NCBI GenBank assembly: GCA_035084275.1
Contig: CM068771.1
Coordinates: forward strand, 1,178,001-1,242,000
Direction: 5' to 3'
Length of the DNA stretch: 64,000 nucleotides
Source: Hydrolagus colliei
Lineage: Eukaryota
Shown: positions 9,393-41,039 of the stretch, one piece after another
How positions within the stretch are numbered: position 1 is the stretch's first letter
Layout: each line of letters starts with the position of its first letter
Notes under the pieces: generated by a model
Seen by the model: only the letters and a program-made list of their open reading frames with translations
Database searches by the model: none
Told to the model about the DNA's origin: nothing
Position numbers and translations under genes: made by a program

Positions 9393-9465
9393 ACTGAAAT
9401 AGCTCAGTTGGGAGAGCGTTAGACTGAAGATCTAAAGGTCCCTGGTTCAATCCTGGGTTTTGGCA
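9393..9465 (+). tRNA. tRNA-Phe-GAA: tRNA-Phe(GAA), degenerate copy (possible pseudogene)
   Basis: Matches vertebrate Phe-GAA but has G1>A and several CpG>TpG changes in the acceptor and T stems; followed by TTTTT. Confidence 0.75.
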
Positions 9466-11102: not shown

Positions 11103-11192
11103 GGCTCGTTGGTCTAGGGGTATGATTCTCGCTTTGGGGTTGCAACTAAATAAACATGCGAGAGGTCCCGGGTTCAAATCCCGGATGAGCCC
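11103..11192 (+). tRNA. tRNA-Pro-TGG: tRNA-Pro(TGG) with 18-nt intron (11139-11156)
   Basis: 72-nt vertebrate Pro body GGCTCGTTGGTCTAGGGGTATGATTCTCGCTTTGGG|TGCGAGAGGTCCCGGGTTCAAATCCCGGATGAGCCC split after G37. Confidence 0.9.
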
Positions 11193-18870: not shown

Positions 18871-18959
18871 GACCATGTGGCCTAATGGATAAGGCGTCTG
18901 ACTTCGGTAAAACATGTAAAGCCATCAGAAGATTGCAGGTTCGAGTCCTGCCATGGTCT
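18871..18959 (+). tRNA. tRNA-Arg-TCG: tRNA-Arg(TCG) with 16-nt intron (18908-18923)
   Basis: Perfect acceptor stem GACCATG/CATGGTC, A box TGGCCTAATGG, anticodon TCG 18904-18906, B box GGTTCGAGTCC, T5 terminator near 18971. Confidence 0.9.
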
Positions 18960-20049
18960 CAGAGAGATACTTTTTCTATGAAGTTAGCATATTGTAAATC
19001 AGTCACCTGTATTTGTCTCTGACATATGTGTTGCCGTTCAAACAATTATCTAGTTTGTGGTGCTGGTCACACCAATGTTGCCATTCCCTTGGGCTAATAT
19101 TGCCATTGTCAATGCTTATCTCCTCCTTGTAGACACCATGTTTGCTCGTTAAATGTGAGTATGCTTCCCCTTTTAAAATATTGGAGGAAGTTCTCGATTC
19201 ATACGTTTCTGAAGTCATAATATGACCGAAGTGACAGCAAGTTTTCACGCAAAATTGTAAATCATGACTAGGTTAATCTGTCTCCTATAGGCTCTAATCT
19301 CTATGTTCTAACCCTTCCACCTTTACAAATTATGAGAAACAAATAAGTGAGGAGTCGTAGTTATATCCATGTTATAATAGTTAAGGGAATAAATGATAAA
19401 TGGATATATACATAATATATACATGGATATATACATAAGAAATGAATAAAGGCAGAATGCATTTGGGTAGAAATATAAGAGGGTGGAAGGAATAACAACA
19501 AAATGTCATTGATAGGCACCTTTCACATCAGCAGGATGTCCCAAGGCACTGATCATGAGATGGGGCAGCGAAGGATAGTGGGAGGATGGCTGAAGGCTTG
19601 ATGGTTGGATAATGCCTTGGACCACCCTACCCACCTTAGGGTTTTGGCTCTCCGTGTTAATAATATTAATAAGAATCCTTATTTTTCATATACACTTTAT
19701 TATGACTGGAATCCTGGTTGCCCTGTTTGGTGGTCTGATTCCCAAGCTGGATGTGGCTCCAAGACACTGCCCACTAAGAGCTTCTTTGCCAGTTTTGGAA
19801 GCTCTAAAACACTAATCTATCAATGCATCATTATGATATGAATCTTTCAATTTGATATTGCACCTTATCATGTCTTTGAGACATCTCAAAACACCACAAA
19901 AATATACTGTAAAGTGAATTGACTATATTGTATGGGAGAATCGTAACACCGAATTGCATGTAGCAGTGTCTTACAAACAGTCGTGGATTGAAATGACCAA
20001 TTTTTATTATTGCCCTCTCTGCTCTCATCTGAAAAATGAAACCCAGTAC

Positions 20050-21440
20050 TTGCTCTCTTGACTACATCCCTACCTCTTTCATCATCTCTCAGCTCCATCT
20101 CCCAGCCACATCCTAACTGACATTATCAACCTTCCCTAACCTCTGGCATTGATCCCATCACTCTAAAAACAGCTGTCATTACTCATATCTTGAAAAAACC
20201 TTTGCTGGAACTATCCCAGCTCAATCTCCATGGACCTGCCGACACCTGGTTCAACTCATATCTTTCTCATCACCTCCACTTTGTTGTCACCAACAGCTTC
20301 TCTTCCAGCCCCTGCACGGTCACCTGGGATGTCCCTCAGATCTCTGTCTTTGGCACGCTACTTTTTAACATCGACATATTCCCTCTTGGTGACATCATCC
20401 ACAGATATGGGGTTAACATCCACATGTATGCAGATGACACCCAACTCTCTCTTTCTGCCTCTCCCCTCAATTCCATGACTACTATTGTCCTGATAGATTG
20501 CCTGTCAAACATCAAATCCTGGAAGAGAGCTAACTTTCTACAGTTGATTGTCAACAAGGTAGAGGCCCACCTGATTGGCTTGAGCCAGCACCTTCACTCA
20601 TCAGGCGCTGGCAGCATCAACCTCCATGGTTGCACATTCAACGTCACCAAGCCAGTCAGGAACCTAGGTAAACTGTCTTTCCTCCCCACATCCAAGCAAT
20701 GATCCGCTCTGCCTTCCCTCTCCAACGCACTATTGCCCGACTGCCATTACCTTACCCACAAGGTCCCTGAAACCCTCATTCATGCCTTCATTACATCCTG
20801 GCTCGACTACACAAACACCCTGCTTGTTGGCCTTCCCAATTCTTCCCTCCACAGGTTGTAATCCAGAACTCTGCAGCCCGTGTCCTCTACCACTCCAATC
20901 TTTGTGACCCCTTCTCCCCCATCCTTGCCCGACTCCATCGACTCCGCATCATGCAGAGGATCCAATTCAAAATCCTGGTCCTCACATCCAAAGCCCTCCA
21001 TGGCTTCATCCCACCCTACATCGGCCTCCCATTCCCTTCTGCTCAGCAAATTCCAGTTTACTCTATATCCCCTGACCCACCCGCTCCACCATTAGCAGGC
21101 AAGCCTTCAGCCACTCTGCCCCAACCTCTGGAACTCCATTCCACAGTCCCTCTGCCCCACCCACTCCCCGACCTCCTTCACGTCCCTCCTGAAGATGCTC
21201 CTCTTCAACAACAACAACAACAATTTACATTTATATTTACATTTATATAGAGCCTTTCACGTCGGGAGGACGTCCCAAGGCGCTAGTTTTGGTGCCATCG
21301 GTCACCACAAATCGCCTCCTTTCCCTCCACCCTCCCCGTCCCCAACTCATGTCTGTTATAATGACTGTCCAGCACCATGGGACGTCCTCCTGACTTGAAA
21401 GGCGCTATACAACTGTAATTTTGTTGCTTTTGTTGTTGAA
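20050..21440 (+). mobile_element. L2 LINE fragments (RT and 3' end)
   Basis: ORF 20190 contains 'WFNSYLS', 'VPQISVFG.LLFNI', 'HMYADDTQL'; L2 tail 'aaggcgctatac...(ttg)n' ends near 21438. Confidence 0.8.
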
Positions 21441-21462
21441 ACTCTTTCCACAATCTGCACAT

Positions 21463-22553
21463 TTACGTAGTACTAAGGATTACGTGTAGTAATCGATGGT
21501 GTCTCTGGAGATGCCCTGGCTGCGTGAAACTCCTTCCACATTCACCACAAGTATAAGGTTTCTCCCCTGTGTGTGATCGATGATGTCTCTGCAGGTCCCC
21601 TTTACTTCTGAAACTCTTTCCACATTGAGCACATGCATACGGTTTTTCTCCCGTGTGTGATCGGTAATGTCTTGGGAGGCTTCCTGAATGTCTGAATGTC
21701 TTTCCACATTCGGTACATTTATACGGTCTCTCTCCTGCGTGTGATCGTTGGTGTGTCTTGAGGATCCATAAACGTGTGAAACTCTTGCCACATTCAGCAC
21801 ATTTATGCCGTCTCTCTCCTGTGTGTGATCGATGGTGTTTCCTCAGGTCCCCTGACTGTATAAAACTCTTTCCACATTCAGCACAATGATATGGTCTCTC
21901 ACCTGTGTGTAACCTCCGGTGTCTCTGAAGGTCACTTGATGTTGCAAAGCTCTTTTCACATTCAGCACATGTATGTGATTTCTCTCCCGTGTGTAATCGA
22001 TGGTGTCTCTTGAGGTAATCTGATGCAGCAAAACTCTTTCCACATTCGGCACATTTATATGGTCTTTCTCCTGTATGTAATCGTTTGTGTATCTGGAACA
22101 TTCCTGAATGTGTGTATCCTTTTCCACAATCAACACATCGATACGGTCGCTCTGCTGTGTGTGATTGCTGATGTTTCTGGAGATGCCCTGATTGAGAAAA
22201 ACTCCTCCCACATTCTGCACATTTATATGGTCTCTCTCCTGTGTGTATTCGCTGGTGCCTTTGGAGAAACTTTAAATGTTTGAATCTCTTTCCACATTGG
22301 GCACATTCATATGGTCTCTCTCCTGAGATCGATCGCTGGCGACTCTGCAGAGATGTTGTTTGCGTAAATCTCTTTTCCACAACAGATCCATGACACTTTA
22401 TCTGCTGAGAAGAATCATTTCCCTTAGCAGCAGATTGTGTTGCTGATGTGTTTCGATGAAGATTGGGATACCTTCTGCTGTGCTTCTGATGGATCGAGGC
22501 ATGAGTAAATACAACATTACAATGAGGGCGAGGGTGAGAAATAGAATCATCCA
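21463..22553 (-). CDS. Terminal exon of PRDM9-like (PR/SET-less) C2H2 zinc-finger gene; 10 C2H2 fingers
   Basis: Acceptor tttcttttctccccaaag|TG (phase 1); degenerate finger HPRPHCNVVFTHASIHQKH, spacer, then 10 CxxC-x12-H fingers with TGE(R/K)P-type linkers. Confidence 0.9.
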
Positions 22554-23559
22554 CTTTGGGGAGAAAAGAAAGATCCGTGTCAACAACATGAGTTTTCTGT
22601 AGGAAATATATTTACACCAATTTTGAATTAATCCTTACATTTTTACAGCACTTGATCAAGTTAAGCATTTCATAGGCTTTACAATCAACAACAACTTGCA
22701 TTTATATACACCCCATAGACAGGTAGCTGCACAGAGCGCTTGTCATTGATGGAGCATCAGGCCTAACTGACAGGAGGTGACCCATGGCTCAGTTGACAAG
22801 GAAGATCTTCAGGCACAATCCGAAGATGGGGAAGGAGGGGACAAAACAGAGAGATTGGGCTGAGAGTGATATGGCTGAAAGCCTAGCCACCAATGGTGGA
22901 ACAGAGTGGACTAGGGACAAAGCAGGCGAAGGAGTGTAGAGATCGACTGGCCAGGACACTGTGAGAAACTCTTATTTTAATGCTGGGGATGTGCTTCATT
23001 GCCGAAGTTGCTATCCTTCAGATGAAATTTTAAACAGGCCTATTCAAGTGGACATTAAAGATCCCACAACACAATTCCAAAATAAAAGAGGGTTTTTCTC
23101 TTATCAAAATAGTTTCCTGGTTCATAATATAGAATCACAGAATTATACAGCACAGATAAGGCCAATCAGCCTATCAGCCAGTGGCAGCTTTGCAAAGAGC
23201 GATCTAAAATAATCGTGCTCTTCCCCTCTCTAACCATATCTTGCAAATTTGTAGTCTTCAAATATCTAACCACTTGTTATCTTGAACTTTGGCACCAAAT
23301 CTGATTCCACCACCATTTCAAGGAGTGAATTCCAGTTGTGAACAATTCGAATACTCCAAATAAAACTGGCCAATTCCTTCATGAGTGGAACATTGCTATG
23401 TGGAAATTGGCAGCGGCCATCACTGCACTTCACAATAACTCTGCAGTTTGTATGGATGACGTGATAAGCTGGTATATACAATTTCAAATGTCGTAGGATC
23501 TTTCACATTATCTGAAGAAGCACGGAGGGGCTTTAGCTTAAAGGCTAGAGGCGTGGACT

Positions 23560-24840
23560 TCTTTAGCATTAAATATCAAACACATCTGCCAGGCAACCTC
23601 ATCCTTCTGCCCCTTATCGCTCATCAGCCCTATACTGTTTCCCTCATCCACCCCATCCTCAGCTCCTACCATAACCCCCTTCCTACATTCCTTCTTCCCC
23701 ACCTCTCCTTCCTCCCTCTATCATCCACCATCACCACTATGAAAACCCACCACCTGCTGCCTCGACCCTCTCCCCACCAACTTGCTGATTACTCACCTCC
23801 ACCTCCTCTGCCCACTGCTGGCAGAAATCATTAATCAGATCCTGAGGATCAGTCCCTCCCACCATCAGAACTGCTGTAACCACAAACCTCCATAAACACC
23901 TACCCTCATTCCCTCCAACCCCAGCCACTACCGCCCCATCTCAAACCGGCCTTTCATTGCAAAAGTTTTAGAATACATTGTTGCCAACCAACTCTCCCTC
24001 CACACCCTATTTGAACCCCTCCAATCTAGTTTCCGCCTTGCCCACAGTTCAGAGATTGCACTTGTAAAAGTCACAAATCATGTCCTCTCTATCTGTGGTC
24101 AGGGTTCCCTCTGCCTCTTTGTCCTCCCGGACCTCTCCACTGTCTTTCCTCTGTCACCCACCTCAGTGGCACCGCACTCACTCGATATGAGGCCTACCTC
24201 ACAAACTGCCAGCAGTAAATCTGTGCAATTGGTTTTGCCTCTCACTTTCACCCGGTGAACTGTGGGGTACCACAAGGGTCCACCCTTGGACCCCTTCTCT
24301 TCCTTATCTATATGCTCCCTCTTGGTGATATCATCCGCAGACTTGGGGGTAAACTTCCACATGTATGCGGATGACACCAAACTCTACTTTTTCATCTGCA
24401 AATGGCAATGCCCCACCCCCACCAGTCCACTAATATTCTGTCAGTGTGTCTGTACGACATCAAGAGCTGAATCAGTGCAAACCTGCAGTTAAATGTTGAC
24501 GTCTTCAGTCCCGTGGCTATCACCTCTCACCTCCTCCACCTAACTGACTTGTGCCTAAAACTCTCCGAACCCGTATGCAACCTAGGCATCAGATTCGACT
24601 ATTTGTGTCTGGCCTCCTCCCTGTCCCTGCACCCCGAAACTCTGGAACTCCCTCTCTCAATCCCTCCACCTCGCCCCTTCTTTTCCATTTTCAGTTCGGA
24701 CCCTAAGACCTTTCAGTTCAACTGTACTTATGGTCACCTTTCCCTTATCACAGGCTTGGCCTTGGGCTGCACTATTGTGAAATCCTCTGTTAGGCCTTCT
24801 GGAGGGCGCTTTATAAATCCAAGTTGTTGTTGTTCTTGTT
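23560..24840 (+). mobile_element. Degenerate L2 LINE in zinc-finger gene intron
   Basis: 'YRPISN.PFIAKVLE' and '[11 protein letters not shown]' motifs; tail 'gggcgctttataaatccaagttgttg'. Confidence 0.75.
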
Positions 24841-26122
24841 ATGACAGTACAAAGCCCTTCTGCCCAGTAACTGGGTTGTGAGTAACGTGGACGATCAGAT
24901 CAAAATCGTGAAATGTGTCTTCAACACATATCCCAGAGGCAAGGATGTAGCTGACCTGAGCCAAACTAACACCTGGAACTCTGAAAACAATAATCCTTGC
25001 ATTTATTCATTTTAGCCTTCACAAGCACTTTGTTCAAAGTGACAAAGTAAACTATCTCAAGACCCTCTCACAATGAGGTGAAAGTTAAATTGCAAGTTTG
25101 CAACCTTTGCAAAAATAATAATAATAACTCTTGTGTTTAATATAATGCTAATGAGGTCAAACTTCTCGAAGCTCCAAACTGGTATTGGTGGGATACATCT
25201 TCCTTTCATCATTCCAAAGAATATCATGCGAGGTTGGCAAGACCTTGGGGTGGAGGTTAAATTTTGCTTATCCAATAACACTGTTGTTAGATTTCTTATG
25301 GATTAAGGGATTTGGGGATAATGCGTACTGGTAGAGTTAGATTAGAAGATCAGCCATGATTTTATTGAATGGCAGGGCAGGCTCGAGGGGCTGAATGGCC
25401 AACTACTGCTCCTTATTCTTATGCCTAACAACAACAACAACAGTATTACACTTGTATAGCAACTTTTAAGTTGGGAGGACAATCCATGCTGCTGGATAAT
25501 CATTGTTTAACAAAGTAATTGGGCATCGGGGAGGGTGAACAAGGAGTGGGAGGATGAATGGTAACTGAAAGTACAGTCAAAGAGGGTCTTGAGATAGTTA
25601 TTGAAGGAGGAAAGTGGGTGAAGGGGAGAGACTGTGACATCGAATTCCAGATTTGCACACACAAATTATGGGGAGGGTAAGGCGGGGGACGTGAATCAGG
25701 CCTTAGCCTGCTCAACAGAGGGAGCAAGTGGTTGGGAGGGTGTTACAAGGTAGTGGGGAATGGCTTAGAGGATTAGCAGGACGTGACTGGGAAGAGTTCA
25801 ATTCATTCTATCGCTCCCATATTTTCTGTGACTCACTTTAGTCTTTAACCATGTTTCCGCTCACATTCTCATCCCCACCCTGATTGGCTTCTACCCCCAG
25901 CTCAGGTGCGAAGCCACAACAATCAAGCTCCTTGGGACATGCTCATGATGAAACGTGTTGTACCAAGCCAAATCTGTATTATATTGTGAATGCTGTGAAA
26001 GACTTGGTAACATTTCAACAACGTGGTGAGGCACTGAATCAAAAGCAACAATTACTGTGAATCTCACTTTATGATTAAAAGTATTTTTATAATGAGAAAT
26101 TCAAGAGTGATTTTTCACTTAC

Positions 26123-26263
26123 ACAGGTAATCAGCATCAGGAAGATCACTTTCCACAGTGTAAGATCTTCTCCCATTCTTTCTCAAATTATATCTGCTAC
26201 TTCCAGCCTCTCGTCCACTCGTTTGGTTGCCTTTGGAGCTGAAACTCTTTCTGGTTCGGCGCC
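26123..26263 (-). CDS. PRDM9-like gene, SSXRD-like coding exon
   Basis: tttactgtag|GG ... CTG T|GTAAGT (phase 1-1); RYNLRKNGRRSYTVESDLPDADYL resembles PRDM9 'YSLRERK..AY.E.SEP.DDDYL' (recalled), ending at the same boundary. Confidence 0.78.
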
Positions 26264-27186
26264 CTACAGTAAATATATTTTTTAAAGGATTAAGAATCAA
26301 AGTGTATACAGAGTCCTGAAAGCTCTTACAACCCACAATTTAAGATGGTGCACAATTTATGGGCAATTCAGTTCAGTTATAACCGACACTCCAGTGCCAG
26401 CACTGAGGGGAAGCCCTGCATTGTGGTTTAAATCAGGCATTATACCTGTGCCTGATCATATGGAATTACATATATCCCACAACGTTGTCCGAAAAGAGAA
26501 GCGCATTTCTCTTTTTGGTGATTTCTCTTTCGCCACAAACTAAATAAGTCAAACATTCCATGGCTGTTTGGAGCACAATGCTGCCACATTTGCTCACAAA
26601 ATAATCATAATCTTTGCATTTGATGTTTGCCTTATCATGTCTTCGAGATGTCTCAAAAGTGCTTCACAGAATATACTGTAACGCGAATTGACTGTATATT
26701 GTGTGGGTGAAACATGGTCGTCAATTCATCCTAGCTATGTCTCACAAACAGTCATAGATTGAAGTGACTAATTTTATTATTATTTATTTGTTACCCCTGA
26801 AAAAGCAATCCGCCAATCATCTAACAACCATGTTCCTTCTTGTTGCTCGATAAACAGAGGCATGTGGTATAAGGAAACATGGCCAACATTTCGCCCAAGT
26901 GGAAATCAAATCTAGGTCTCTCTTTTGCGAGACAAGTGCTTTAACCACTGACATACAGGACTCCACAATGGTATGCATGAAAAGTCCCCCAAGTATTACC
27001 AGACACGAGAGGTTATAAGGAATTTGTTCACTCTGTGCATCAATAAGAGCAACATTAAGGGTTGGGATGAGAAAATGGGATTAATGACAAAAAAAGAAAC
27101 AGAATAAGTATCAGTGGCAAAGATGCAATCGAACAAACTGCCACCCGTGTTCAATTGTTCTGTGTAGCTTTTTGCAGACAGAATAC

Positions 27187-27349
27187 CGTTATTAGATGTT
27201 TTGAGATCGTCATTGTCACTAATTGAGACTCCTCCTCTTTTGACCAGACTGCTCTCTTCATTTGCTGAACCCACAGGAGTCACATCTCTTGTGTGGTCAC
27301 CTCCATCCTCAACTGATCCCGACGGGATGTATGAGCTCTCCTTTTCGCT
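27187..27349 (-). CDS. PRDM9-like gene, internal coding exon
   Basis: gcatttcag|AGC GAA ... AAC G|GTATTC; 163 nt, phase 0-1, open and in frame with both neighbours; donor choice less certain. Confidence 0.65.
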
Positions 27350-27625
27350 CTGAAATGCAGAACATAAGCGTGTTTTCAGTATGGCTCAGTCTGTCTTACT
27401 CTCACCTCTGAGTCAGAAGGTTGGCGGTTTCAAGCTCCAAGTGTTGATTTGGAATCCATTTTGTCTAAAATGACATGGCAAAGCACTGCTTGGAGTGAGC
27501 TACACTATAGAATGAGGTCCATTTAGCTGTCCAGGTGGAGTGCTCCTCCCAATATGAAAAGAAAATCTACTTGAACTTCTCTTCTCTAGGAAAGAAAGAC
27601 ATAATCTACCCGATCTATCGAGATA

Positions 27626-28771
27626 CAGGTAAACCTCTACTTAGGACGGGGTTGCGTTCCTGAAAAACTGTATCTAAATTGAAATGTGATTTCCCATGCG
27701 GTCCCATTATATAACCAGAGATATGTTCTTTTCACAACATTTTCGGATCTTAAACCCACTAAATAACACACAAAACCACACAACATAACACACAAAATAA
27801 ACACATAGGCAAGAAAGGGTACTTGAGGTAACTGTACAGTATTGTACTTTAATACTGGCAAACGTTAATACAGTACACTACATGCAAACTTTAATACTGG
27901 CAGTGTGACAATGGCACTTGCAGCTTCCCCACTCATCTTGATGTTGTGGAGCCCATTGCATCTTTTAAACATTTGAAACCACCCTCTGCTAGCACTGAAA
28001 GATGGTGCCATTGAGCCTTCTCCTTCCTGATCATTTAACTCCCTAAACAATGGTTTTGCCTTCTCTTGGATAACCAGGATGAGTGGTACTACTTTGGTTC
28101 TATTCCTCAACCCAGACACTCAGCATTCTTTCCACGTCTTCCAGCACATCACTCCTATGTTTTGCTAATCTGCTTTGTACTCTAGCTGTAACACACCTCT
28201 AACTTGCAGTATATTGTCCTTATTCTGTTTTATAGTATAACATTGATCTAGCTAGCCCTAAAGCCCACCCGACGCCTGTACCTTTATTGCCAGACCCGAT
28301 GCGCTTTATCACCTCCAATTTAGTACTGTATTTGAAGTGATGACTTTGCGGGGTTTCTGGCCACTAATTGTATTACCGCTGTTTATTTCACTTAGTGCTG
28401 TCTCTCCCAACTTGGTAGAAGCGCAGTAGTGGCTTTAAATCGCTCGGGAATGTTCGGAAATTACTGTAATACTGACTTTGCTTGGTATCGCTTCAAATCA
28501 GCTGGCTTTTAAACAATGACGTGGCGACCTGCCATTGGCCTGTTCAAATGCTTGCATTTACCCGCGAATACACTATGGATTGTGTGTATGGACAAACAGA
28601 ACACGCAAAATGCGGCCACGATATTCAAAATATGTACTGCGCATGCACAAAAAACTAATTTGTTCGTTGAAACAAATCCGAGTGTCCTATATCGATCGAA
28701 AGATGTTAAAAAATTATGGTGCTTCAATCAAAACGTCCTAAATAGAACCATCTTAAATAGAGGCTTACCTG
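27626..28771 (-). mobile_element. Internally deleted Tigger/pogo (Tc1-mariner superfamily) DNA transposon
   Basis: Terminal inverted repeats CAGGTAAACCTCTACTTAGGACGG / CCATCTTAAATAGAGGCTTACCTG, TA on both sides; CENP-B-type HTH remnant 'FSASRGWFQMFKRCNGLHNIKMSGEAASA'. Confidence 0.9.
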
Positions 28772-29106
28772 TACCTGTTGCCCTTGGATGATTTCTAGGG
28801 TGACAGACTATTGCTATCAGGATAGATCGGATAGATTATGTCTTTCTTCCCTACAGAAGAAGTTCAAGAGAGGACACAGATAAGATGATGGTGGTACACA
28901 ACATAATTTGCTGTTGTTGTAGTTAGTGTGGGATCTAAATGAGATGCATTTTAGAGGAAGTGAGGTAGACACATGAGGAAGAAGGAAATAGAAAGGAGGG
29001 AGTAAGTATTGGATGGAGAACGGAAGATTTGGAGCAAACAGCAGGATGGACTAGCTGGACTGAATGGCCTGTTTCCATGCTGGAAATCTAATCTTCAGCT
29101 AGTTAC

Positions 29107-29178
29107 CTCCTTGCTTTTCTTCCTTGCTGGCTCCCCATTCGTGGCTTTCATCCTTATCGTCGGCTTGAAATATTTCAT
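29107..29178 (-). CDS. PRDM9-like gene, putative first coding exon (ATG at 29178)
   Basis: ttttctacctctcag|AA ATG; MKYFKPTIRMKATNGEPARKKSKE|GTAACT (phase 0); basic PARKKSK may be an NLS. Confidence 0.62.
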
Positions 29179-31068
29179 TTCTGAGAGGTAGAAAAGAAAT
29201 GGCAGTTCATATCACGGACACAAAACACTATACCCATCACAGCAGTCCTTGCCAGACTGCACTTATTCCCAATTACCAAATAGATCGACTTGAAGATCCT
29301 ATCACCAGTTTTCAAATACCGTCATGCCCTTGCACCTCCCTAACTATTCAATTTGCTTACTCCTCAACTCTAAGACCCATTGCCTCTGCTCAGCTAGATT
29401 AGGCGTCCTGTCTGCACCATCCACTGCACCATCAAAAGCCTTGCTATGAGCCACTACCCGCCAAAATTATTTCCCTCAATATATATCAACGGCAAGGATT
29501 ATTATTATTATTCTTAATATTTATTATTAATATTATTGTGATTAGCAACAGTAATATGACACACCATTAGTATGCCACACCATATAAATACCACAAAAAA
29601 ATTTGTTCACCACACCCCATTAATACCACACACCATATTAATACAACACGCACCATCAGTATACCACTGCACATCAATAATAGACAATAGCACAGTCGAA
29701 GTGGAAAGTGTCCTTCCTCCTCCACATCTGCGCTATGACCACCACCCCTGTAACATTACCTGCCAAAACCCTTGTCTACACATTCGTCACATCAAGGCTC
29801 GACTATGGAAATTCCCTCCTCTTTGGCCATGTCCCCTGCCCAACCCGCCCTGTCATCAGTGGCCGGGCTTTCAGCCTCTGCCCCCACACTCTGGAACTCC
29901 ATCCCACAGATCCTTTGCTCGCTTCCTCTTGCTCAGATCCGGATACCTGACTGTTCAGCGCCTTGGACCATGAAAGGCACTTTATAAATGTAATTGTGTT
30001 GTTGTTGAAGTTGCCTAGGGAGGGAATGAGGCGAAGGGACTGCGGGTTGGAATTCCAAAGGTGTGGCTGAAGGCTTGACCACCAATGGTGGCTGTTTGGG
30101 TGGAGGATATGAAGCAGGCCAGAGCCCACTGAGCAGAAGGAATGGAGAGGTTGGTAGGGTTTAGGAGGTCGCAGGGTTAGGATACGTAAAGGCCATGGAT
30201 GGTCTTGATGATGGGGACAAGGATCTTCAATTGAAGCGTCTGTGCGATGGAGAGACATTAATGTCCAGTGAGTATGTGGGTGATAGGTTCGCGGAGCCTG
30301 GTCCGGCGGGAGAGGACACAGGCTGCGGAGTTCTGGATTATCTTCTGCCTATGGAGAGCAGAATTGGAGAGGCCAACAAGCAGGGCTGTTTACTCCTCCT
30401 CCCCCTCGCTACTCTCTCCCATTGTGCACACCCTCCATGTCCACTTCCCGTCCCCCTTTGCTACATCAGATCTCTATACCTGTGGTTAATGGATTTCCTG
30501 TTACAACAGGAAGCCTTCTCATCAATGCAGACACATTTGAAAATAGGGCCACATTTAATACCTTATCATGCCACAAAATCTTGCTGTTTATCGCAGATGC
30601 TTTAGAGTACAATTACTAATTTGTTGATGAAAAGGCCAGCAATGGTGCACCGCACCCACACAGACATCTAATGATTAAGTCTCTCATATATATTCAGTGT
30701 CAGTGAGTGTAACATTTTGAATGAATGGAGAATGCAAACTCAGAATAATACTTTCACATGCAAGGACCCATTGAAACAAAAGGATACAGATATAGGGTTG
30801 TCATTTCGGGACAGTTATCTGGAAGTTTTCATTTATTGATCTGGATCAAGATTAATTACTGGAACAAGTTTAGGAGAAAGGGTCATCGAGGGCAAAAAGC
30901 CAGAGTTACTTTAGAATAAGTTTAAAACCGAAAACTATGGATGGTGTATTCTGTCAGATAAGCCACCACCACTACCCCACATACACATACCAAATAATCT
31001 ACTCACTATTTTTATTGCTGAGTATGGCTATAATAACAACTTATTTTTTACAACTTATTTTTTACACT

Positions 31069-31418
31069 GAGCTCCTGTGGCTCAGTGGTTAGAGCACTTG
31101 TCTTGCAAGCTGGGGAAACCAAGCTGGGGAGACCTGTGTTCGAATCCAGGCCGGTCAGGGCGAAACCTTGGGCAAGTTTCCTTACTCCACACGCCTAATA
31201 ATAATCCCTCCAAAAAAACACAATAATAAAATTGGTCATTTCAATCCACGACTGTGTGTGGGACACTGCTGTGCGCAATTGGCTGCCGCGATTCGCCGAC
31301 AAATATATACAGTGAATTCACTTTACAGTATATTCTGTGAAGCGCTTTGGGACGTTGATAAGATGTGGAAAGCGCTATATGAAATGCAAGGATTATTATT
31401 ATATTATTATTATTATTA
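31069..31418 (+). mobile_element. Full-length tRNA-derived SINE (young subfamily)
   Basis: Near copy of 8844-9190 including the internal 14-bp duplication. Confidence 0.9.
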
Positions 31419-31789
31419 CAATTGTATTTCGCCTTTCACGTTGGGACGATGTCCCAAGGCGCTGGTCAGTCAGTCGCCTGCCTGGTAATCAAACCCATTC
31501 CTCTGACTTGCGAGGGCGAGTCATCTCACCCCCAGCATCCAAATAGCAACTCATATGTCCCCTCGCAGGATCTCACACTTCTTTCTCAAGACTGAGAATA
31601 AATTGGGCTGTGGGAGGCTGCGCTGAAGGTGTCCATCTCTCCCTCTCTCTGCAAAACTGCTGCTCAAGTTCACCAGCAACTTGAGCAGGTGGGGCTACAA
31701 CTCTATTTCTCTACAAAAAAAATTACCAGAGACTGAGGCAGGAAAACTGCTGACATTTAATTCTGTTACAAGGTGAGGCAGAGTGAAAC

Positions 31790-33195
31790 ACACTTACATA
31801 GTTTCTCACACACAGGGACAGACAGGCACACACTCTCACACAGTAACCTGAGACACACCCAAATACATACATTCTCACACAGTCGTTGAGATACACAGAC
31901 ACTCACTAACACAGTCACTGAGACAGACAAGCACACACTCTCTCAGTCACTGAGACACACACACACACACAGACACTGAGTCACATACACACATTCTTAC
32001 AGTCACTGAGACACACGCAGTTAGAGACACACACATACACACACTCGTTCACTGAGATACACACATACACACACTCTCAGTCACTGAGACACACATACAC
32101 ACTCTGTCACTGACACACACACACACACTCAGTCACTGACANNNNNNNNNNNNNNNNNNNNNNNNNNNNNNNNNNNNNNNNNNNNNNNNNNNNNNNNNNN
32201 NNNNNNNNNNNNNNNNNNNNNNNNNNNNNNNNNNNNNNNNNNNNNNNNNNNNNNNNNNNNNNNNNNNNNNNNNNNNNNNNNNNNNNNNNNNNNNNNNNNN
32301 NNNNNNNNNNNNNNNNNNNNNNNNNNNNNNNNNNNNNNNNNNNNNNNNNNNNNNNNNNNNNNNNNNNNNNNNNNNNNCACACACACACTCTGTCACTGAC
32401 ACACACACACTCTCAGTCACTGACACACACACACACACTCAGTCACTGACACACACACACACACTCAGTCACTGACACACACACACACACACACACTGTC
32501 ACTGACACACACACACTCTCAGTCACTGACACACACACACACACACACTCTCAGTCACTGACACACACACACACTCTGTCACTGACACACACACACTCTC
32601 AGTCACTGACACACACACACACTCTGTCACTGACACACACACACTCTCAGTCACTGACACACACACACACACACACTCAGTCACTGACACACACACACAC
32701 ACACACTCAGTCACTGACACACACACACACACACACTCAGTCACTGACACACACACACTCTGTCACTGACACACACACACTCTCAGTCACTGACACACAC
32801 ACACACTCTGTCACTGACACACACACACACTCAGTCACTGACACACACACACACTCAGTCACTGACACACACACACTCTCAGTCACTGACACACACACAC
32901 TCTCAGTCACTGACACACACACACACTCAGTCACTGACACACACACACACTCAGTCACTGACACACACACACACTCAGTCACTGACACACACACACACAC
33001 ACACTCTGTCACTGACACACACACACTCTGTCACTGACACACACACACACTCAGTCACTGACACACACACACACACACTCTCACTGAGATCCACAAACAC
33101 AGTCTCACAGTCACCGAGACACAAAACCACAGACAGACACATACACTCTCACAGCCACACCGCACTCACTCACAGATACTCTCTCTCTCTCTCTC
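31790..33195. repeat. Compound satellite [TCAGTCACTGA(CA)n] with degenerate flanks; contains an assembly gap
   Basis: Dozens of CAGTCACTGA/CTGTCACTGA cores separated by variable CA runs. Confidence 0.95.
32142..32377. other. Assembly gap (N run)
   Basis: Run of n. Confidence 1.
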
Positions 33196-33201
33196 ACTGA
33201 C

Positions 33202-33720
33202 CGGACCCGCTATCAGGGCTCTGTTGTCCAGCCGCTCGGAGTCGCTCGGTCCCCGGCTGCTCCGCTTCTCGCAGCTTCCGCCATGTCTGATCTCCTCCTC
33301 CAACCGTCACTCTCTCCCCGCCCACTCACTTCCCATTGGTCCTTCACAAACCACCCGCCCCCTGCGACCGGGACTCGCTATGGTCAACTGGGTTGTCAAT
33401 CAGGCGCAGGCCTCTGGTTGGCCTGTAGCCACGTCAATCATCTCCCCTCCACCCGCGCCTCGCGCTCTCTGTCCAACCGTCAATCATCTGTCCCCGCCCA
33501 CCCGATCGTCTTTGATCGTTTCGAACACTCTCGAGCTCCCCATTGGTCGGAAGAGCTGTCAATCATATCAACCATCCCCGCTTCTCTTCCGCCCACTCGC
33601 TCCCATTCACAACACCCGCCTCCTGAATCCCAGCTTCCCATTGGTCACGGTGGCTATCAGTCAAGCTACCTGGCTCTCCCAACACTTACTCACTCTCCCA
33701 TTGGCTGGTTATAGTATATT
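33202..33720 (-). promoter_or_regulatory. CpG-rich promoter and putative non-coding first exon of the zinc-finger gene
   Basis: Only CpG-dense island in the window; several CCAAT boxes, TGATTGAC motifs, GC boxes, ATGGCGGAAG (YY1/ETS-like), donor CCG|GTCAGT at 33202. Confidence 0.7.
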
Positions 33721-33740
33721 CAGTCAGGTCAGGTTGATCA

Positions 33741-34058
33741 TCATAATAATAATAATCCTTGCATTTGATATAGCGCCTTTCACATCTTCTAAACGTCTCA
33801 AAGCGCTTCACAGAATATACTGCAGAGAGAATTGACTGTATATCTGTGGGGGAAACGCGGCAGCCATTTGTGCACAGCAGCGTCTCACAAACAGTCGTGG
33901 ATTGAAATGACCAATTTATTATTATGTATTTCTTTGGAGGGATTATTATTATTATTATAGGCGTGTGGAGTAAGAACATTGGCCCGGACCTGCCTGGATT
34001 CGAAAACAGGTCTCACACTTGTAAGGCGAGTGCTCTAACCACTGAGCTACAGGACTCC
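33741..34058 (-). mobile_element. Full-length tRNA-derived SINE
   Basis: Reverse-complement head GGAGTCCTGTAGCTCAGTGGTTAGAGC...GTTTTCGAATCC, core and (TTA)n tail. Confidence 0.88.
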
Positions 34059-34533
34059 ACTAAATCCACTACATCGCAAACATCTTGCAAAACATACTGA
34101 TAATTAGTAATCTAAGTCATTTTTCTCGTTTTCTTTCCTCATACGATTCATCAACATCTCAAAAGAAAACGTGTACAGGGGAGATGCACTGATTTAAACC
34201 CGACCTGAGGTTTTCTGATGCATTGGTATTGCACTCGTTACTCAAACACTGAATGACACTGGACAGAACAAATTATGACTTTCCTGCAATCAATTTTTGG
34301 TGAACATATTTTCATACAATTTCCCTGAATTTACAGAGATCTATGTGACTGATTCAATACAATTGCAAACTGTCATAAATTATCTGGAAATTGACACAGA
34401 GCGAATGCTAGATAAAATGTTCACAGTTCCTCCTTGATTTCCCTAGAACTGGAGCGGTGGACAAAATAAAATGTCCAATTAAACACAATTACATTGTATT
34501 TGAGTCACTACTGACATTGATGAGCATAACAAG

Positions 34534-34599
34534 GACCATGTGGCCTAATGGTTAAGGTGACTGACTTCCGAGAACTTGTTGACGCCATCAGAAGATTGC
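34534..34599 (+). pseudogene. 3'-truncated intron-containing tRNA-Arg pseudogene
   Basis: GACCATGTGGCCTAATGG...CTTCCG[intron ending GCC]ATCAGAAGATTGC, then cut by an L2 fragment; upstream flank homologous to the 18871 copy. Confidence 0.8.
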
Positions 34600-35061
34600 T
34601 ACTGTGACCAAAGGCGCGGTCGAAGAGAAAGGTCTTCAGCTGTGATCTGAAACTGGGAAAAGAGGGGGCGAGCTGAAGGGAGTGACAAAGGGACTTCTAG
34701 AGCCTTGGGGCATAGTGGCTGAAGGCATGGCCCCCGAGGGTGGAGTGGAGAATTTAGGGGACATGGAGGAGGTCAGACCCGGTGGAGCGAATCCAGCGGG
34801 TGCTGGTTTTGGGGAGAGGGGAGATCAGAGAGGTAGGAGGGTGCAAAGGAGTGGAGGGACTTGAAAACAAGGGTGAGGATCTTGAAGTCGATAAATCTTG
34901 ACTGTTGAGTGACTCGGGATGATCTCTTCAAGTGAAAAGACGCTATTCATATGTAATTTTGTTGTAGTTGTTGTCCTTGTATTCAAAAGGTAATCAAAGA
35001 ATCAAAGAAAATGTTGGGAGTTTTTTTTTGAAAATCAGAGGAAACGCCCAATTATACAAAA

Positions 35062-35134
35062 GCCGAAATAGCTCAGTTGGGAGAGCGTTAGACTGAAGAT
35101 CTAAAGGTCCCTGGTTCAATCCCGGGTTTCGGCA
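35062..35134 (+). tRNA. tRNA-Phe-GAA: tRNA-Phe(GAA), intact
   Basis: GCCGAAATAGCTCAGTTGGGAGAGCGTTAGACTGAAGATCTAAAGGTCCCTGGTTCAATCCCGGGTTTCGGCA; full cloverleaf. Confidence 0.97.
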
Positions 35135-35395
35135 TTCTTGTTAAGTTTGACTGTAACTCACAGCCTTGATATTTCCCAAGTCTGTCCTGTCATGAGCAGC
35201 TCTGAGATTTTATGTCCTTACGTTATCTATGGACTGTACTATCTAACAAATTGAGTCAGCGATTGATGAGCACTGTTCATTTTGGCAGAAAATGATCATG
35301 ATAAACTTTGGTAAATGTGAATGAAATCAACAAAGATTGATTCAGTTTTGTATTGCCAAGTTCATTTGTTGAAATTTCAGCTTTTTAATGAGTGT

Positions 35396-35487
35396 GGCTC
35401 GTTGGTCTAGGGGTATGATTCTCGCTTAGGGCGTTAGCAACTGAAGGAACATGCGAGAGGTCCCGGGTTCAAATCCCGGATGAGCCC
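35396..35487 (+). tRNA. tRNA-Pro-AGG: tRNA-Pro(AGG) with 20-nt intron (35432-35451)
   Basis: Same 72-nt Pro body as 11103, anticodon AGG 35428-35430, split after G37; TTTT at 35491. Confidence 0.9.
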
Positions 35488-35950
35488 AACTTTTGGCAAA
35501 TGTTCTATATTTCTCATTCAAACTGTATTTGTAAGCAAATAAACTATATGGGTGAGATTACCCAAGTGCTGCAATGATGTACTCCAAGATTCCTATTATT
35601 GTGAGCCAAGTTTGTTGGAGCAATTTGTCAATTGCTTCAATATTTCTCTGCCACTGTCCCGTCTCTCAGTTGGTAGTTATTCCTATGATATCTGAAGAAG
35701 GATAATATTGTGATGAGCACCCATCATGGATACTCAAAAAGAATTTAATACTGACCAAACTTAATGATTTATTCGGAATGCAACAGGAAGTGTAGTGCAT
35801 TTCAATGTCCAGAAAGGGTTTGCAAAATGTACATAGGAGAAGTTGCTGACCATGTGGAATCATAGCAGAGGAAACAGACAAATTAAATACTCTATAAAAA
35901 GAAAATTTAAGAAGTTGTGTATAAAAAACAAGAATAACAACTTGTATTTA

Positions 35951-36351
35951 TTAGTGTTCGGTGATTTTTCAATATATTGGTTACATCGATATAATTTTTC
36001 ATATCGATATGCCGATATTGGAAATTTAAATATATCAATATATCGTAAATATTGGTGTATTGTGTCCGGCGATATATCGATATATCAGTTATATCGGTAC
36101 AATGAGAACTTTTTCAACTTACCTTGTTGCCGGCATTGCAAACCTCCTGGGCCTAGAGCACGGAATGCGCGTGCATATCGGAATGCGTGCACACATCCGA
36201 ATGCGCGCACACACATCCAAATGTGCGCACACACCAGAATGCACATGCATGCGCAGTATGACACGCACACATAAATATCGATATATTGGTATATTCGATA
36301 CGAGCCCACCGATATATCGATATCAGAAAATGTCCATATCAATGGACCCTC
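35951..36351. mobile_element. Putative non-autonomous DNA transposon/MITE (hAT-like)
   Basis: Both ends are dense in ATCGATAT/CCGATAT motifs; degenerate terminal inverted repeats; central GCACAC..GAATGC repeats. Confidence 0.5.
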
Positions 36352-36759
36352 AGGATAGTAATAATAATAACCGTTATAATCGTTTTATTTGTTACAGCCC
36401 TTTTCACATCTTAGTGACGTCTCAAAGCGCTTCACAGATTATACTGTAAAGTGAATTTACTCTATATTTGTAGGCGAAACATGGCACTGACTGTGTGTTT
36501 CTGTTTGTGTCAGTTTGACTTTGTGTGTACGTGTGTCAGTTTGATTGCGTGCGTGTGTCGGTTCCTGTGGCTCAGTTTGAGTGTGTCTGTGTGCATGTTT
36601 GTGTCTGTTTGACTGTGTGTGCATGTTTGTGTCTGTTTGATTGTGTGTTTATGTTTCTGCTTGACTGTGTGTGTGTCTGTCTGGTTGACTGTATTTGGAT
36701 TTAACGAAGGTGCTTTTTAATACGCAGACAAACTTATAGCTAATGGAAAACATTACATT

Positions 36760-37400
36760 TGTACAGGGCCGTTCACGTCAGGAGGACATCCAAAGGCATT
36801 GGACATTTACTGCTTCAGAACCGAGCCAAGGACAGGGGGTAAGGGAATGGTGAATAAGGAGTTCCCAATCGCCAGAGCCTGGTGAGCGGATGGGGCCAGC
36901 AGGTTGGTTAGGGGATAGGAAGTCAAGGATATTTGGTGGGCGAGGTTGTGGGTGGCTTTAAAGTTGAGGTCTAGGTTCTTGAATTTGATCCTCTCGGTGA
37001 CGGGGAGGCAATGGAGTCTGGCAAGTTTGTTGGAGATGGGGTCACAAAGTTTGGAATGGTGAAGGACATGGGATGCAGAGTTCTGTATTATCTGCAGTCT
37101 GTGTAGGGGGGAATTGGGAAGGACGACCAGCTGCATATTTGCATAATTGAGCTTGGATGGGATGAAGACGTGGATGAGGGTTTCAGCGGCTTTGGTGGTG
37201 AGTTAGTGGCGGAGTTTGGTCAATGTTGTGGCGATGGGAAAAGGCAGTGCAAGTCATTGGTTGGATGTGGGGGAGGAAAGACAATTGAAGATCAAATAAG
37301 AGACCTAGGTTCCTGATTGGGTTAACGTGGTTAAGTGTGTTAAACAAAACATTTAAAACATGGAGGTTGATGCAGCCAGCGCCTGAGACAAAAACATAAC
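36760..37400 (-). mobile_element. L2 LINE 3' fragment
   Basis: Minus ORF 'LHRLQIIQNSA...LHCLPV.ERIKFK' is a typical L2 ORF2 C-terminus. Confidence 0.75.
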
Positions 37401-39367
37401 GGAATGCTGCCAATGCTGACAACAGAACAGCCAGACACTTTAGCAGGACTTCAAGAATCACTCGTGGAGGCAGATATTCTGATTTTGTATTCGTTAGCTT
37501 TACAAGCGAAAGCCAAAGCCCTGATGCCAAATAGTTGGAAACTTACAAGGTGGTACTCTCATACGTATTTAAATCATATCGGAGCATTGGCTTTATCAAT
37601 AGCAGTATAGAGCATGACGGAAACATATTACTTTAAACCTACACAAATGGCTGGTTAGGGTTCAGAATTGGACTGTTGTGTCCAATTCTGTGCACCATGC
37701 TTTCAGATGCATATATGAGCCTCAGAGATGTGAAAGGCGCTGCACAACTGTCATTTTGTTGGTGTTGTTGTTGGAGGGTGTGCAGTTGATAGATAGCAGA
37801 GCCAGCAAACTACAATGAGTCGGAGACACTAGGGAGGCTGGAGTTTTGATCCTTAGAGCACAGATGATTGAGGGGAGCTTGAGAACATCAGAATTTTCTG
37901 ATGAAAGAAGAACAATTCTGTCCAGTTCACTGTCCACCATCCAAGCAGTCACTGGGTGTTCGCCTCCCAAAAAGTGTGTTGAGCCACGCTATTCACCCAC
38001 ATATGTGCAGTTAGTTTAATCAATTCTATATCCTGTGAAGTGTGAATAGAGATGACTATTATTATTATTATTTTTGTTCTTTTTCAAAATATTGTAATGA
38101 GGCTTGTAGAGCCGGGAAACGTGCCCACGGTTTAACCATGTCTGGAGTCAAACCCATTTCTCTTTCTTGCAAGTGGAATGTTCTAGTAGTGAGTGACAGG
38201 ACTCCACAATTATACTGGACAAAATATTGGCCAGTGAGTATAGCTCACTGACCAACTTGGACAGTGAGTATAGTATCCCAGTATAATTTATGCCTCCCCA
38301 CACAACAACATTCAGTTTCCAACTCATCAAACGTAACTTAGAAACTTATTTCCTAAACTACAATATATTCTAAGCTATATTAAATCCAACAGCTTCCCGT
38401 ATCAGGCATTGGGATTCTAAGTGTTCATTTAGATTTGTGGTCCTGCGGTAAAGGAAGGACTGACAGAAATGATTTGCACACCTGGAACAATTTATAAATT
38501 CATATGAGCAGTATTTCCTACTAGTTAACAAATTACATTACAGTAATGCTTACGTATCTACCTACAGTTCACAATGATATAAGTGATATAAGCAACTTCT
38601 GCAGAAGAGATAGGAGAGAAATATACAATTCCATGTCCATTTTAACATGTCCTTTTTGGGCTACATAAAACATATCCAATTATTTTGCTACTTTTCTCAG
38701 TTTAATCAGCCCAAATTATCCAGATAATATCCCTTGTCCAATTTTATGGCAGCAAATCCAATTCAATTATTTATTCTTTCCAATTCTATTTTTTTTCTCT
38801 CAATTAATTCGGTGACTCTCTTTCCAAATCAGTATCATTTATAAATTTTCACAAGCAAATGTCACCTCTTATTTATTTCAAGTTGACTAGTTTGTGGGAT
38901 AACTAGAGCTCCTTCCACCTGCAAACCACAATTCGCTTGATAACGGATAAAAACTGCTAACAGTTTGTTATTTCCAAATGGTCGTTTGCTTCTTCTGCAA
39001 AGCTTGTCACAAACAGCTCCCCTTAATCTTAGCTAAGATTGATCAGAAAAATAATCATTTCAAATATAACTTGAAATATAATTTATCATATTAATTACAG
39101 CGTCCTATGGATTTGTCTTCTTATATGAATAGTACATAAAACCTTAGGTTGCTCAGACATTTTTAGTTCTATTGTTCATCAATGATCCGATTTGAGTGAA
39201 ATATATCTAACGGCACAATATCTCTGGTCAAACAATGCCAGGCATTTTCCAACAGCTTTCTGTTCAATATAAAAAATTATTATTTTAAACATATGCCGTA
39301 AAATTTCTAAGATAGCGCAGAACTTTGTATGAGTGTAATGTTGTGAAGACCAAAGAGAGCAACACAG

Positions 39368-40272
39368 CTAAACATGGAAAGGAGAGTGGGCCAGTAAGCG
39401 AGTGATGGGGTAAATGAAGATGGATTTCAGGCTCTGCCTGAATTGGGTCTGGGTCACACCATAGATGACGGTGTTGGAGCAGGAGCTGAGAAACTGCAGC
39501 ATGTAACCCACATGCTCAGCGATGGTGAAAGGGCTGCTGTAGTCAGACTGCATGAGTTTGGCCTTTGTCATCAGCGCACACATGTAGGTGACCAAGTAGG
39601 TCAACCACAGTAACACGAAGGTCCCCGAGATGGTAAAGAGCAAGATTAGAGATTTCTGCCGACTCTCCATCTCCTCGTCCTTCAACGTCACTGATCCCCG
39701 CAGACGCTGGCGCACAGCGCTGGCCATTAGAACATGCCTGATGGTCAGAGAGTTGAAGAGGAGAATGACGATGAAGGGAAGCATTGGATTTACAATCATA
39801 TGAATCAAGTAAAATGACCTCCCGCCAATCGTATTATAAGAGCTGGGCTTGATGCTGCAGAACCAGGGCTGCCCATTGATCACCATCAGCGGTTGGTACA
39901 TAAAATACATGGGGATATTTATTGCGCTTAAAAATGCACAGATTGTCCAGATCACCAGGCCCGCTGTCCTCTCGGTGCAGTATTTGGGTTTGAGCTTTGG
40001 GCAGCAGATGGCAATGAAGCGGTCGAAGGTGAACGCCATGGTCAGCCAGACAGAAGTATCAATTACGAAGAAGCGCAGTACAATGTGTACTCGGCACACG
40101 GGGGTCTGGAACAAAACAAAGTGCGGCAGGTGGAGCTGAAATGTCTTCCTCAGGATCACACCAATGAATATGACCAGCAGATCAGCAACAGCCATTGCGA
40201 CCAGGTAGCGGGTGACACATTTGGAGAGTCCACACTTTCCCTGGGCCAGGACCACAATGGTCACCGCGATCG
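39368..40272 (-). CDS. GPR139-like GPCR g3, coding exon 2 (spliced 321 aa)
   Basis: Acceptor tttcctgcag|CG ATC GCG; 905-nt open exon with DRF-IAICCP and SSCSNTVIY. Confidence 0.92.
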
Positions 40273-41039
40273 CTGCAGGAAAGTCACAAACACAATCATA
40301 GAATTCACTATCTAAAGATTGATTGTGCCAGGCAGCAAACTATAATAATATTCTGTGCATTTGCTGGGTGCTTATCGCTTCGATCATACATTTCAAACAG
40401 ATGCATTTCACAGAATAGACAGAGAATATTACATACACGTTTGCAGCACAAAAGGCCATTCAGCCCTTTGTAACTGTGCTAGTTATTCTTTTAAATGAAA
40501 TGTCAGTCCATATTGTGGATGTATAGGAAGTAATTGCACATGTCAATGTCCCAATAACTACCATGTTTCTAGTTATCAATTCATTTTTAGAAGCATTGTT
40601 CTCTCTGGAAAGAAAGCAACAAATTGACTAACCTTCGAGCTACAATTTATCGCAATGTATAAAGAGCATGTGGTGTAAGGAAACACAGCTAAGCCATAGC
40701 TCTGCACACAAAACAAACCAGTTAAGTTTGTATCCAAGTGAGCTTTGTAAGCACAATTACTCACTGTCCGTCACTCGCTTCCTCTCCGGCTTTGCTCCAG
40801 AAATGTCATGACCACAATTCCCTCTGCCTACGCTTTGGATTGTCTCACACATTCTCAATGCGCATGGGCTGACGATGCCTCACTGATTGCTCTTCTCCGA
40901 TTCTCGGCTTGAGCATGTGTCTGCAGCACCAGACCCAATCGCAAACACTACTTATCCTTTCCTATTCCATGTACTTTGTTGCTAAAATTCAAGTCAATAT
41001 CTCCTAACAACTTCTGCAGCTTCTCACTCTCTGGTATTC

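Follow-up and report, generated by a model that had tools for sequence, protein, structure and literature searches.

A likely PRDM9-derived zinc-finger gene without KRAB and PR/SET domains in Hydrolagus colliei

A stretch of 64,000 nucleotides from Hydrolagus colliei (assembly GCA_035084275.1, contig CM068771.1, positions 1,178,001 to 1,242,000 of the forward strand; hereafter the window, in whose own numbering all positions are given) carries on its minus strand, between 29178 and 21463, a multi-exon zinc-finger gene. An earlier note, made from the letters of the window alone, had claimed that this gene derives from PRDM9 and has lost the PR/SET domain. The locus raises the question whether the gene indeed descends from PRDM9, which parts of PRDM9 it has kept, and whether it still looks like a working gene. 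As judged from its sequence, it is likely an intact-looking, PRDM9-derived multi-exon zinc-finger gene without KRAB and SET domains, which would act as a DNA-binding regulator.

Gene structure and descent from PRDM9

The gene comprises four exons of 72, 163, 141, and 1091 nt, with AG acceptors and GT donors in the window sequence. Exon 1 (29107-29180; all exons are on the minus strand) follows an acceptor (cag|) before 29180, carries an ATG at 29178, ends at the donor GAG|gtaact, and encodes MKYFKPTIRMKATNGEPARKKSKE. Exon 2 (27187-27349) encodes an acidic, serine-rich linker containing ..GSANEESSLVKRG.., and exon 3 (26123-26263) encodes the SSXRD-equivalent part, ending in ..RYNLRKNGRRSYTVESDLPDADYL plus one nucleotide, in phase 1. 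Exon 4, the last exon (21463-22553), opens at a phase-1 acceptor (ccccaaag|TG) and holds 362 codons and a stop; exon 3 and exon 4 would join in frame. Each exon piece translated without a stop, and frame arithmetic over the exons translated one by one gave 24 + 54 + a junction codon (G|GG) + 46 + a junction codon (T|TG) + 362 codons, i.e., 488, followed by the stop. The four GT-AG exons and the 488 amino acids claimed in the earlier note were thus all present at their coordinates. According to the earlier note, phase 1 also applies to the end of the SSXRD exon and the start of the last exon in PRDM9.

Two parts of the gene, exon 3 and the start of exon 4, tie it to PRDM9. A PRDM9-only profile, made from SET-bearing proteins of sharks and rays (20 in all), was run with filters off on the 2,697 six-frame pieces of at least 15 residues in the window. 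Only two pieces matched significantly: that of exon 4 (E 1e-103), where the match starts at profile position 384 directly behind SET, and that of exon 3 (E 3.9e-6), where it covers positions 165-208 up to the L of ..DDDYL. In tblastn, a check suggested in the earlier note, 14 proteins of the PRDM9 search, 12 of them SET-bearing, were compared with the whole window at E<=10. The matches of shark PRDM9 were confined to exon 3 and to exon 4 from its start. Exon 3 was matched by P0008 and P0014 (both E 2.5e-4), P0016 (8e-4), and P0009 and P0017 (both 0.002), and all five matches ended at 26124, the last full codon of the exon. P0016 and P0017 were collinear with exon 4 over the post-SET finger, the linker, a degenerate finger, and the array.

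The reverse direction of search led back to PRDM9 as well. The 46-residue exon 3 peptide was searched with phmmer against 1.84 billion representative proteins (E<=0.001) and gave four matches, of which the only real relatives were P0001 and P0002 of Callorhinchus milii; P0003 and P0004, long unnamed repeat proteins, matched via a short acidic repeat and were rejected as spurious. A profile of the SET-less N-termini then found, in a database of 5.8 billion, the PRDM9-like sawshark protein P0007 (E 4e-10), which carries Pfam KRAB and PR/SET and matched exon 3 in BLASTP with an E-value of 1e-7. A second profile search with P0007 added, in which the SET columns were kept, returned 324 proteins. 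The best 120 of these 324, almost all SET-bearing, were PRDM9/7 proteins of sharks, rays, coelacanth, tetrapods, sturgeon, and lamprey; the only SET-less ones among these 120 were two C. milii proteins, and no holocephalan PRDM9 was among them. A three-protein C. milii N-terminal profile matched 97 of 118 PRDM9/7 proteins at E<=1e-3, the best being P0008 (2.9e-21), which aligned over profile positions 28-160 with the equivalents of exons 1-3 in order. Exon 2 corresponds by homology to the stretch linking KRAB to SSXRD in shark PRDM9, and on its own showed weak BLASTP similarity to Heptranchias PRDM9 (P0008, E 0.005). A protein homolog search with the pre-finger part of exon 4 and a PDB sequence search with exon 3 gave nothing, and a protein atlas search with P0001 gave low-scoring, unrelated clusters only. 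The claimed derivation from PRDM9 is supported by these comparisons, as the two anchors, exon 3 and the post-SET finger, were significant in both search directions.

The second anchor, SHPRPHCNVVFTHASIHQKHSRRYP (22465-22539, minus strand), is a decayed version of the post-SET zinc finger of PRDM9, in which the first Cys is changed to Arg and the last His to Tyr. Of its 25 residues 16 are identical to residues 415-439 of Heptranchias PRDM9 (tblastn, E 2.7e-5), in which Pfam places a zf-C2H2 finger (residues 416-438) directly after PR/SET. The earlier note had let exon 4 open with this copy; the copy is there, but L-DDSIS precedes its HPRPHC. With two zinc ligands gone it is no longer a four-ligand finger, and Pfam and PDB searches saw no finger at this place. 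According to the excerpted text of PMC6116924 the post-SET finger helps to organise the PR/SET domain, and the loss of its ligands fits the loss of that domain.

A further degenerate finger without zinc ligands, EKRFTQTTSLQSRQRSISGERPYE (22306-22377, minus strand), lies directly before the array, at the same place as the degenerate finger of shark PRDM9; PDB zinc-finger chains match there (exon 4 residues 59-82), as generic finger matches. The array itself (21484-22311, minus strand) is the only finger array in the window and consists of ten C2H2 fingers; each has its Cys2-His2 ligands, spaced as His-x4-His in finger 10. The ten fingers counted in the earlier note were confirmed, while its spacer before them turned out to hold this eleventh, degenerate finger. 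The ten 84-nt units have diverged to a mean pairwise nucleotide identity of 69% (maximum 79%), and the array is not minisatellite-like; its most variable columns are the helix positions -1, +2, and +3. Finger 10 is followed by a garbled linker and the stop, and in the 3' flank (20900-21462, minus strand) by an out-of-frame finger start (..KCADCGKSF) and interspersed repeat copies. Up to five other copies in the window were found for 464 of the 571 nt of 20900-21470, and the piece 21408-21479 matched the PRDM9-only profile weakly (E 0.45). The array appears to have lost its ancestral end within 20900-21462.

At the 5' end, the ATG at 29178 is the first Met of exon 1, where the C. milii paralogs have Val. 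This start codon stands as given in the earlier note, but the exon acceptor lies 2 nt before it and a further exon upstream is likely; the C. milii proteins have an additional short 5' exon. A tentative candidate (33202-33284, minus strand) begins with an ATG (33284-33282) and ends at 33202, directly before a donor (CCG|gt). Read from this ATG, it meets a TGA (33215-33213) and leaves a 23-codon upstream open reading frame (ORF); the reading frame open up to the donor (..SPDSGS|) contains no ATG. With the ancestral start thus out of frame, ATG 29178 is the probable start of translation. In a Smith-Waterman comparison with the first 28 residues of P0001, the piece 33216-33377 (minus strand) scored highest of the 2,697 window pieces (46, next 35; 11/20 identical); BLASTP gave no significant match between the putative 5' exon and P0001. 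The exon lies in a CpG-rich, G+C-rich, promoter-like stretch (33180-33480) with a G+C content of 0.63 and a CpG observed/expected ratio of 0.88, the window medians being 0.42 and 0.42. The contig of the public run X1 spans 33150-33762 with no listed difference in 33202-33284; its record has six gaps at unstated places.

Missing domains and the SSXRD-equivalent exon

None of the other domains of PRDM9 was found. On both strands, the PRDM9-only profile matched nothing with its positions 1-60 (KRAB) and 209-383 (knuckle and PR/SET). Pfam found no SET, knuckle, or KRAB in the 105 stop-free minus-strand pieces of 22554-29106, nor in the 123 minus-strand pieces of 29179-42208, where it saw only a 7tm_1 receptor ORF. 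No PR/SET domain (PF21549 or PF00856) was found, and tblastn with the 12 SET-bearing proteins returned none from the window; KRAB (PF01352) was absent from both strands of the 64 kb, although the shark query proteins do carry it. At E<=10, Pfam matched nothing in exons 1-3 or in the first 82 residues of exon 4. The earlier note had seen no knuckle or SET exon in the 3.5-kb interval between exons 3 and 4 and no KRAB exon, and both observations extend to the whole window.

The interval itself, intron 3 (22554-26122), is free of N runs. It contains a stretch (25811-25939, minus strand) that resembles the last exon of a C. milii isoform, X4 (P0001 residues 156-198; tblastn E 3e-5, 18/43 identical). 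This alternative-exon-like stretch has an in-frame stop and is present as a single copy in the window, and the match ties intron 3 itself to a SET-less locus. Other copies in the window were found for 507 of the 3,569 nt of the intron. The L2, CR1, and SINE debris named in the earlier note could not be shown; Pfam found only a Tc5-type relic, which lies in intron 1 (27868-28119, minus strand; DNA-binding domain of a Tc5/pogo-type transposase, HTH_Tnp_Tc5, E 2.3e-5).

Whether exon 3 deserves the name SSXRD depends on the evidence used. It is homologous to the stretch of PRDM9 directly before the zinc knuckle, and in tetrapods the stretch matched by the C. milii profile is the Pfam SSXRD itself (P0039, residues 205-232; P0033, 114-141; P0068, 171-201). 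The SSXRD exon proposed in the earlier note is thus backed by homology and position, but not by the Pfam SSXRD model (PF09514, cut-off 23 bits). On PRDM9 proteins the same model was silent for P0007 and reached 14.2 bits for shark P0008 and 21.3 bits for coelacanth P0029; the stretch RY.LR..ER..YTEE..L.DDDYL is plainly conserved in these three proteins despite the failure of the model. In the excerpts of the two studies, Baker et al. (PMC5519329) report C. milii PRDM9 without an SSXRD, and Cavassim et al. (PMC8892340) set the SSXRD aside as unreliable to detect. The Pfam model may under-call the motif in cartilaginous fishes, and reported absences may partly be due to the model, which bears on published claims that some cartilaginous fishes lack the SSXRD.

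Relatives in Callorhinchus milii and other PRDM9 derivatives

Relatives of the gene are already annotated in C. milii, under uninformative names. P0001 is XP_042196805.1 ('uncharacterized LOC103190347 isoform X4'), P0002 comes from LOC103185808, and P0005 and P0006 come from a third locus, LOC103191364; P0006 is XP_007910548.1 ('zinc finger protein 814-like isoform X1'), which also has two UniProt entries. Aligned separately to the C. milii proteins, exons 1, 2, and 3 showed 50, 76, and 65% identity, and the exon borders coincided. Exon 1 aligned with P0001, P0005, and P0006, the exon end being identical, and P0001 matched exon 2 in tblastn with 63% identity (E 5e-16).

In XP_007910548.1, the N-terminal module runs directly into the finger exon, which is 57% identical to exon 4 over 277 residues, the pre-finger part included. 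The window gene shares with this C. milii group the three-exon module, the exon borders, and the direct junction to a finger exon that begins with a decayed post-SET finger and continues with fingers; the SET-less junction was found in C. milii proteins from two annotation pipelines. The two differ in their 5' exons, in the number of fingers (8 Pfam fingers in XP_007910548.1, 10 in the window gene), and in a shifted acceptor of the last exon (..DYL-SPKVEDSE.. in XP_007910548.1, ..DYL-L-DDSIS.. in the window). By its sequence, the window gene belongs to the XP_007910548.1 family. Because the same build occurs at three or more C. milii loci, the sequences point to a small family of some age rather than to a single deletion event. 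The family may not be restricted to chimaeras, since SET-less relatives of sharks and rays could sit beyond the best 120 of the 324 matches.

The short C. milii isoforms P0002, P0005, and P0001 stop at or just after the SSXRD-like stretch, have no fingers, and recall mammalian SSX. Read-through of the exon 3 donor in the window gives ..DADYLCK and then a stop.

Compared with PRDM9/PRDM7 of cartilaginous fishes (Heptranchias perlo XP_067831265.1, Scyliorhinus canicula XP_038669366.1), the order of the parts is shared, from the linker over the SSXRD-equivalent ending in ..DYL to the post-SET finger, the degenerate finger, and the array. The window gene, however, lacks the KRAB-related domain and the zinc knuckle as well as PR/SET, and with the latter the methyltransferase; two ligands of its post-SET finger are missing, and its fingers are diverged and not minisatellite-like.

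The known PRDM9 derivatives named in the excerpted text of PMC8835667 are PRDM7, SSX, and the KRAB zinc-finger proteins, the last including a coelacanth group described there as having neither SSXRD nor PR/SET. Like the window gene, mammalian SSX is PRDM9-derived and SET-less and has kept the SSXRD (PMC8835667). SSX proteins, however, keep a KRAB-related domain and have no fingers, while the window gene shows the reverse. The SSXRD of SSX also contains an RLRERK core that is needed for nucleosome binding and, in the available portion of PMC7714695, is described as absent from the PRDM7/9 type; the window gene reads NLRKNG instead. With no KRAB, with fingers, and with this core, it does not belong to the SSX family. 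The KRAB zinc-finger proteins, including the coelacanth zinc-finger proteins with an ancestral KRAB, are also regulators thought to have arisen from PRDM9 by loss of PR/SET (PMC8835667, in part). They keep the KRAB without an SSXRD, whereas the window gene keeps the SSXRD-equivalent without a KRAB, and no KRAB A box precedes its fingers. Moreover, the KRAB zinc-finger genes of the coelacanth mostly have a single exon, and the window gene has four or five.

An SSXRD-equivalent with fingers, without KRAB and without SET, is thus a combination different from the known PRDM9 derivatives. Our literature search met with no account of such a family; the supplementary tables of PMC5519329 and PMC8892340, which were outside that search, might list the loci. 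The family would represent a third route from PRDM9, beside SSX and, as is thought, the KRAB zinc-finger proteins, and offers a natural experiment in which the SSXRD stretch stands alone beside a DNA-binding array. Such derivatives escape surveys in which SET or KRAB is the criterion for a PRDM9 relative.

Possible function, rival explanations, and surroundings

The predicted product would consist of a disordered N-terminal linker with the SSXRD-equivalent part, the decayed post-SET finger, and ten C2H2 fingers. The fingers would bind DNA as a sequence-specific factor; the intact ligands in all ten fingers and the concentration of variation at contact positions support a DNA-binding, PRDM9-derived gene. 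Without PR/SET the product would not methylate histones. The module of linker and SSXRD would be its only effector of PRDM9 type, possibly serving as a protein-contact or repression-type tail; in the excerpts of PMC8835667 and PMC6116924, the SSXRD of SSX1/2 represses on its own. The product may then work as an ordinary zinc-finger transcription regulator and not as a hotspot designator, a role that a diverged array without minisatellite character fits. Among the functional readings of the sequence, we give this one roughly even chances. A bolder proposal is that the old, multi-copy family in chimaeras is a second independent birth of zinc-finger genes from PRDM9, with SSXRD kept and KRAB dropped in a mirror image of the way the KRAB zinc-finger genes arose, and that its members, including the short SSX-like isoforms, compete with PRDM9 in the germ line for partners or DNA sites and so modulate hotspots; we regard this as a long shot.

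Several observations weigh against an intact regulator derived from PRDM9. The Pfam SSXRD model gave no match at E<=10 for exon 3, P0001, or P0002, exon 1 alone had no detectable similarity to PRDM9, and the PRDM9-only profile left exons 1 and 2 unmatched among the 2,697 window pieces. In the excerpted text of PMC6116924, the KRAB and SSXRD region of human PRDM9 had no repressive activity, and according to part of PMC7714695 no binding to nucleosomes was seen for SSX-like peptides of the PRDM7/9 type, in which the RLRERK core is without its first Arg; the window core at this place reads ..YNLRKNG... The one public run that holds the locus consists of contigs, is DNA-like, and is not recorded as RNA. 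Possible signs of decay are the out-of-frame start codon in the 5' exon, the lost post-SET ligands, and the array end cut by repeats.

These last points could mean that the locus is a pseudogene in decay: a duplicate of PRDM9, stripped of the SET and KRAB exons, that drifts without function. The ancestral-looking start codon is in a different frame from its donor, the post-SET finger is short of two zinc ligands, finger 10 is aberrant, an out-of-frame finger remnant and repeat copies follow at the end of the array, and no RNA run containing the locus was found. Yet the four exons provide 488 stop-free codons with canonical splice sites, Cys2-His2 is kept in all ten fingers, and an in-frame ATG is available at the start of the next exon, exon 1. 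Three C. milii loci with annotated products also show this build with the same exon borders, at a protein identity of 50-76%, and by a rough estimate a neutral copy at this level of divergence would be expected to contain several stops. We therefore consider a pseudogene unlikely.

Two further explanations would remove the SET-less derivative altogether, and both are highly improbable. Pfam sees the fingers alone, the N-terminal part is disordered and compositionally biased (pLDDT 0.40 in the Atlas model), and exon 1 has no PRDM9 match, as would be the case for an ordinary lineage-expanded C2H2 gene that resembles PRDM9 by chance or through low-complexity composition. Such a resemblance would hardly produce two independent anchors that flank the exact place of knuckle and SET and are significant in both search directions, with every shark match on exon 3 ending at the last codon of the exon and with the post-SET finger, linker, and degenerate finger collinear with shark PRDM9. 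Alternatively, a complete PRDM9 could have lost its KRAB and SET exons through an assembly error, or the SET-less form could be an exon-skipping isoform. The window does contain two N runs (32142-32377 and 42209-42607), and the single DNA-like run may share its sample with the assembly. However, intron 3 has neither an N nor a SET-like piece, and the first N run (32142-32377) falls within a minisatellite of 24-nt units that is situated upstream of exon 1, away from the place of SET. The same SET-less junction in C. milii proteins from two annotation pipelines, and the intron 3 stretch that matches an alternative exon of the C. milii SET-less locus, also speak against a missing SET exon.

In the surroundings, the space between exon 1 and the putative 5' exon contains the minisatellite (24-26 nt units, 31828-33074, 27.5 copies in its best-kept part, broken by the N run). 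Further upstream, the next gene (39371-40339, also on the minus strand) is the single-exon receptor ORF of 322 codons (Pfam 7tm_1, E 5e-24), for which no PDB relative was found at E<=1e-10. The stretches 33708-34079 and 34576-35000 are very high-copy interspersed repeats, with a summed contig word depth in run X1 of about 1e7 compared to about 42-50 in the flanking unique sequence. A second stretch with a high CpG observed/expected ratio (1.3-1.8) and low G+C (0.29-0.44) lies at 35800-36400. ARAGORN called five tRNA-like genes on the plus strand (9393-9465, 11103-11192, 18871-18960, 35062-35134, and 35396-35487), with an odd two-base anticodon call at 18871 and a Phe(gaa)/Pro tRNA-like pair on either side of the zinc-finger gene.

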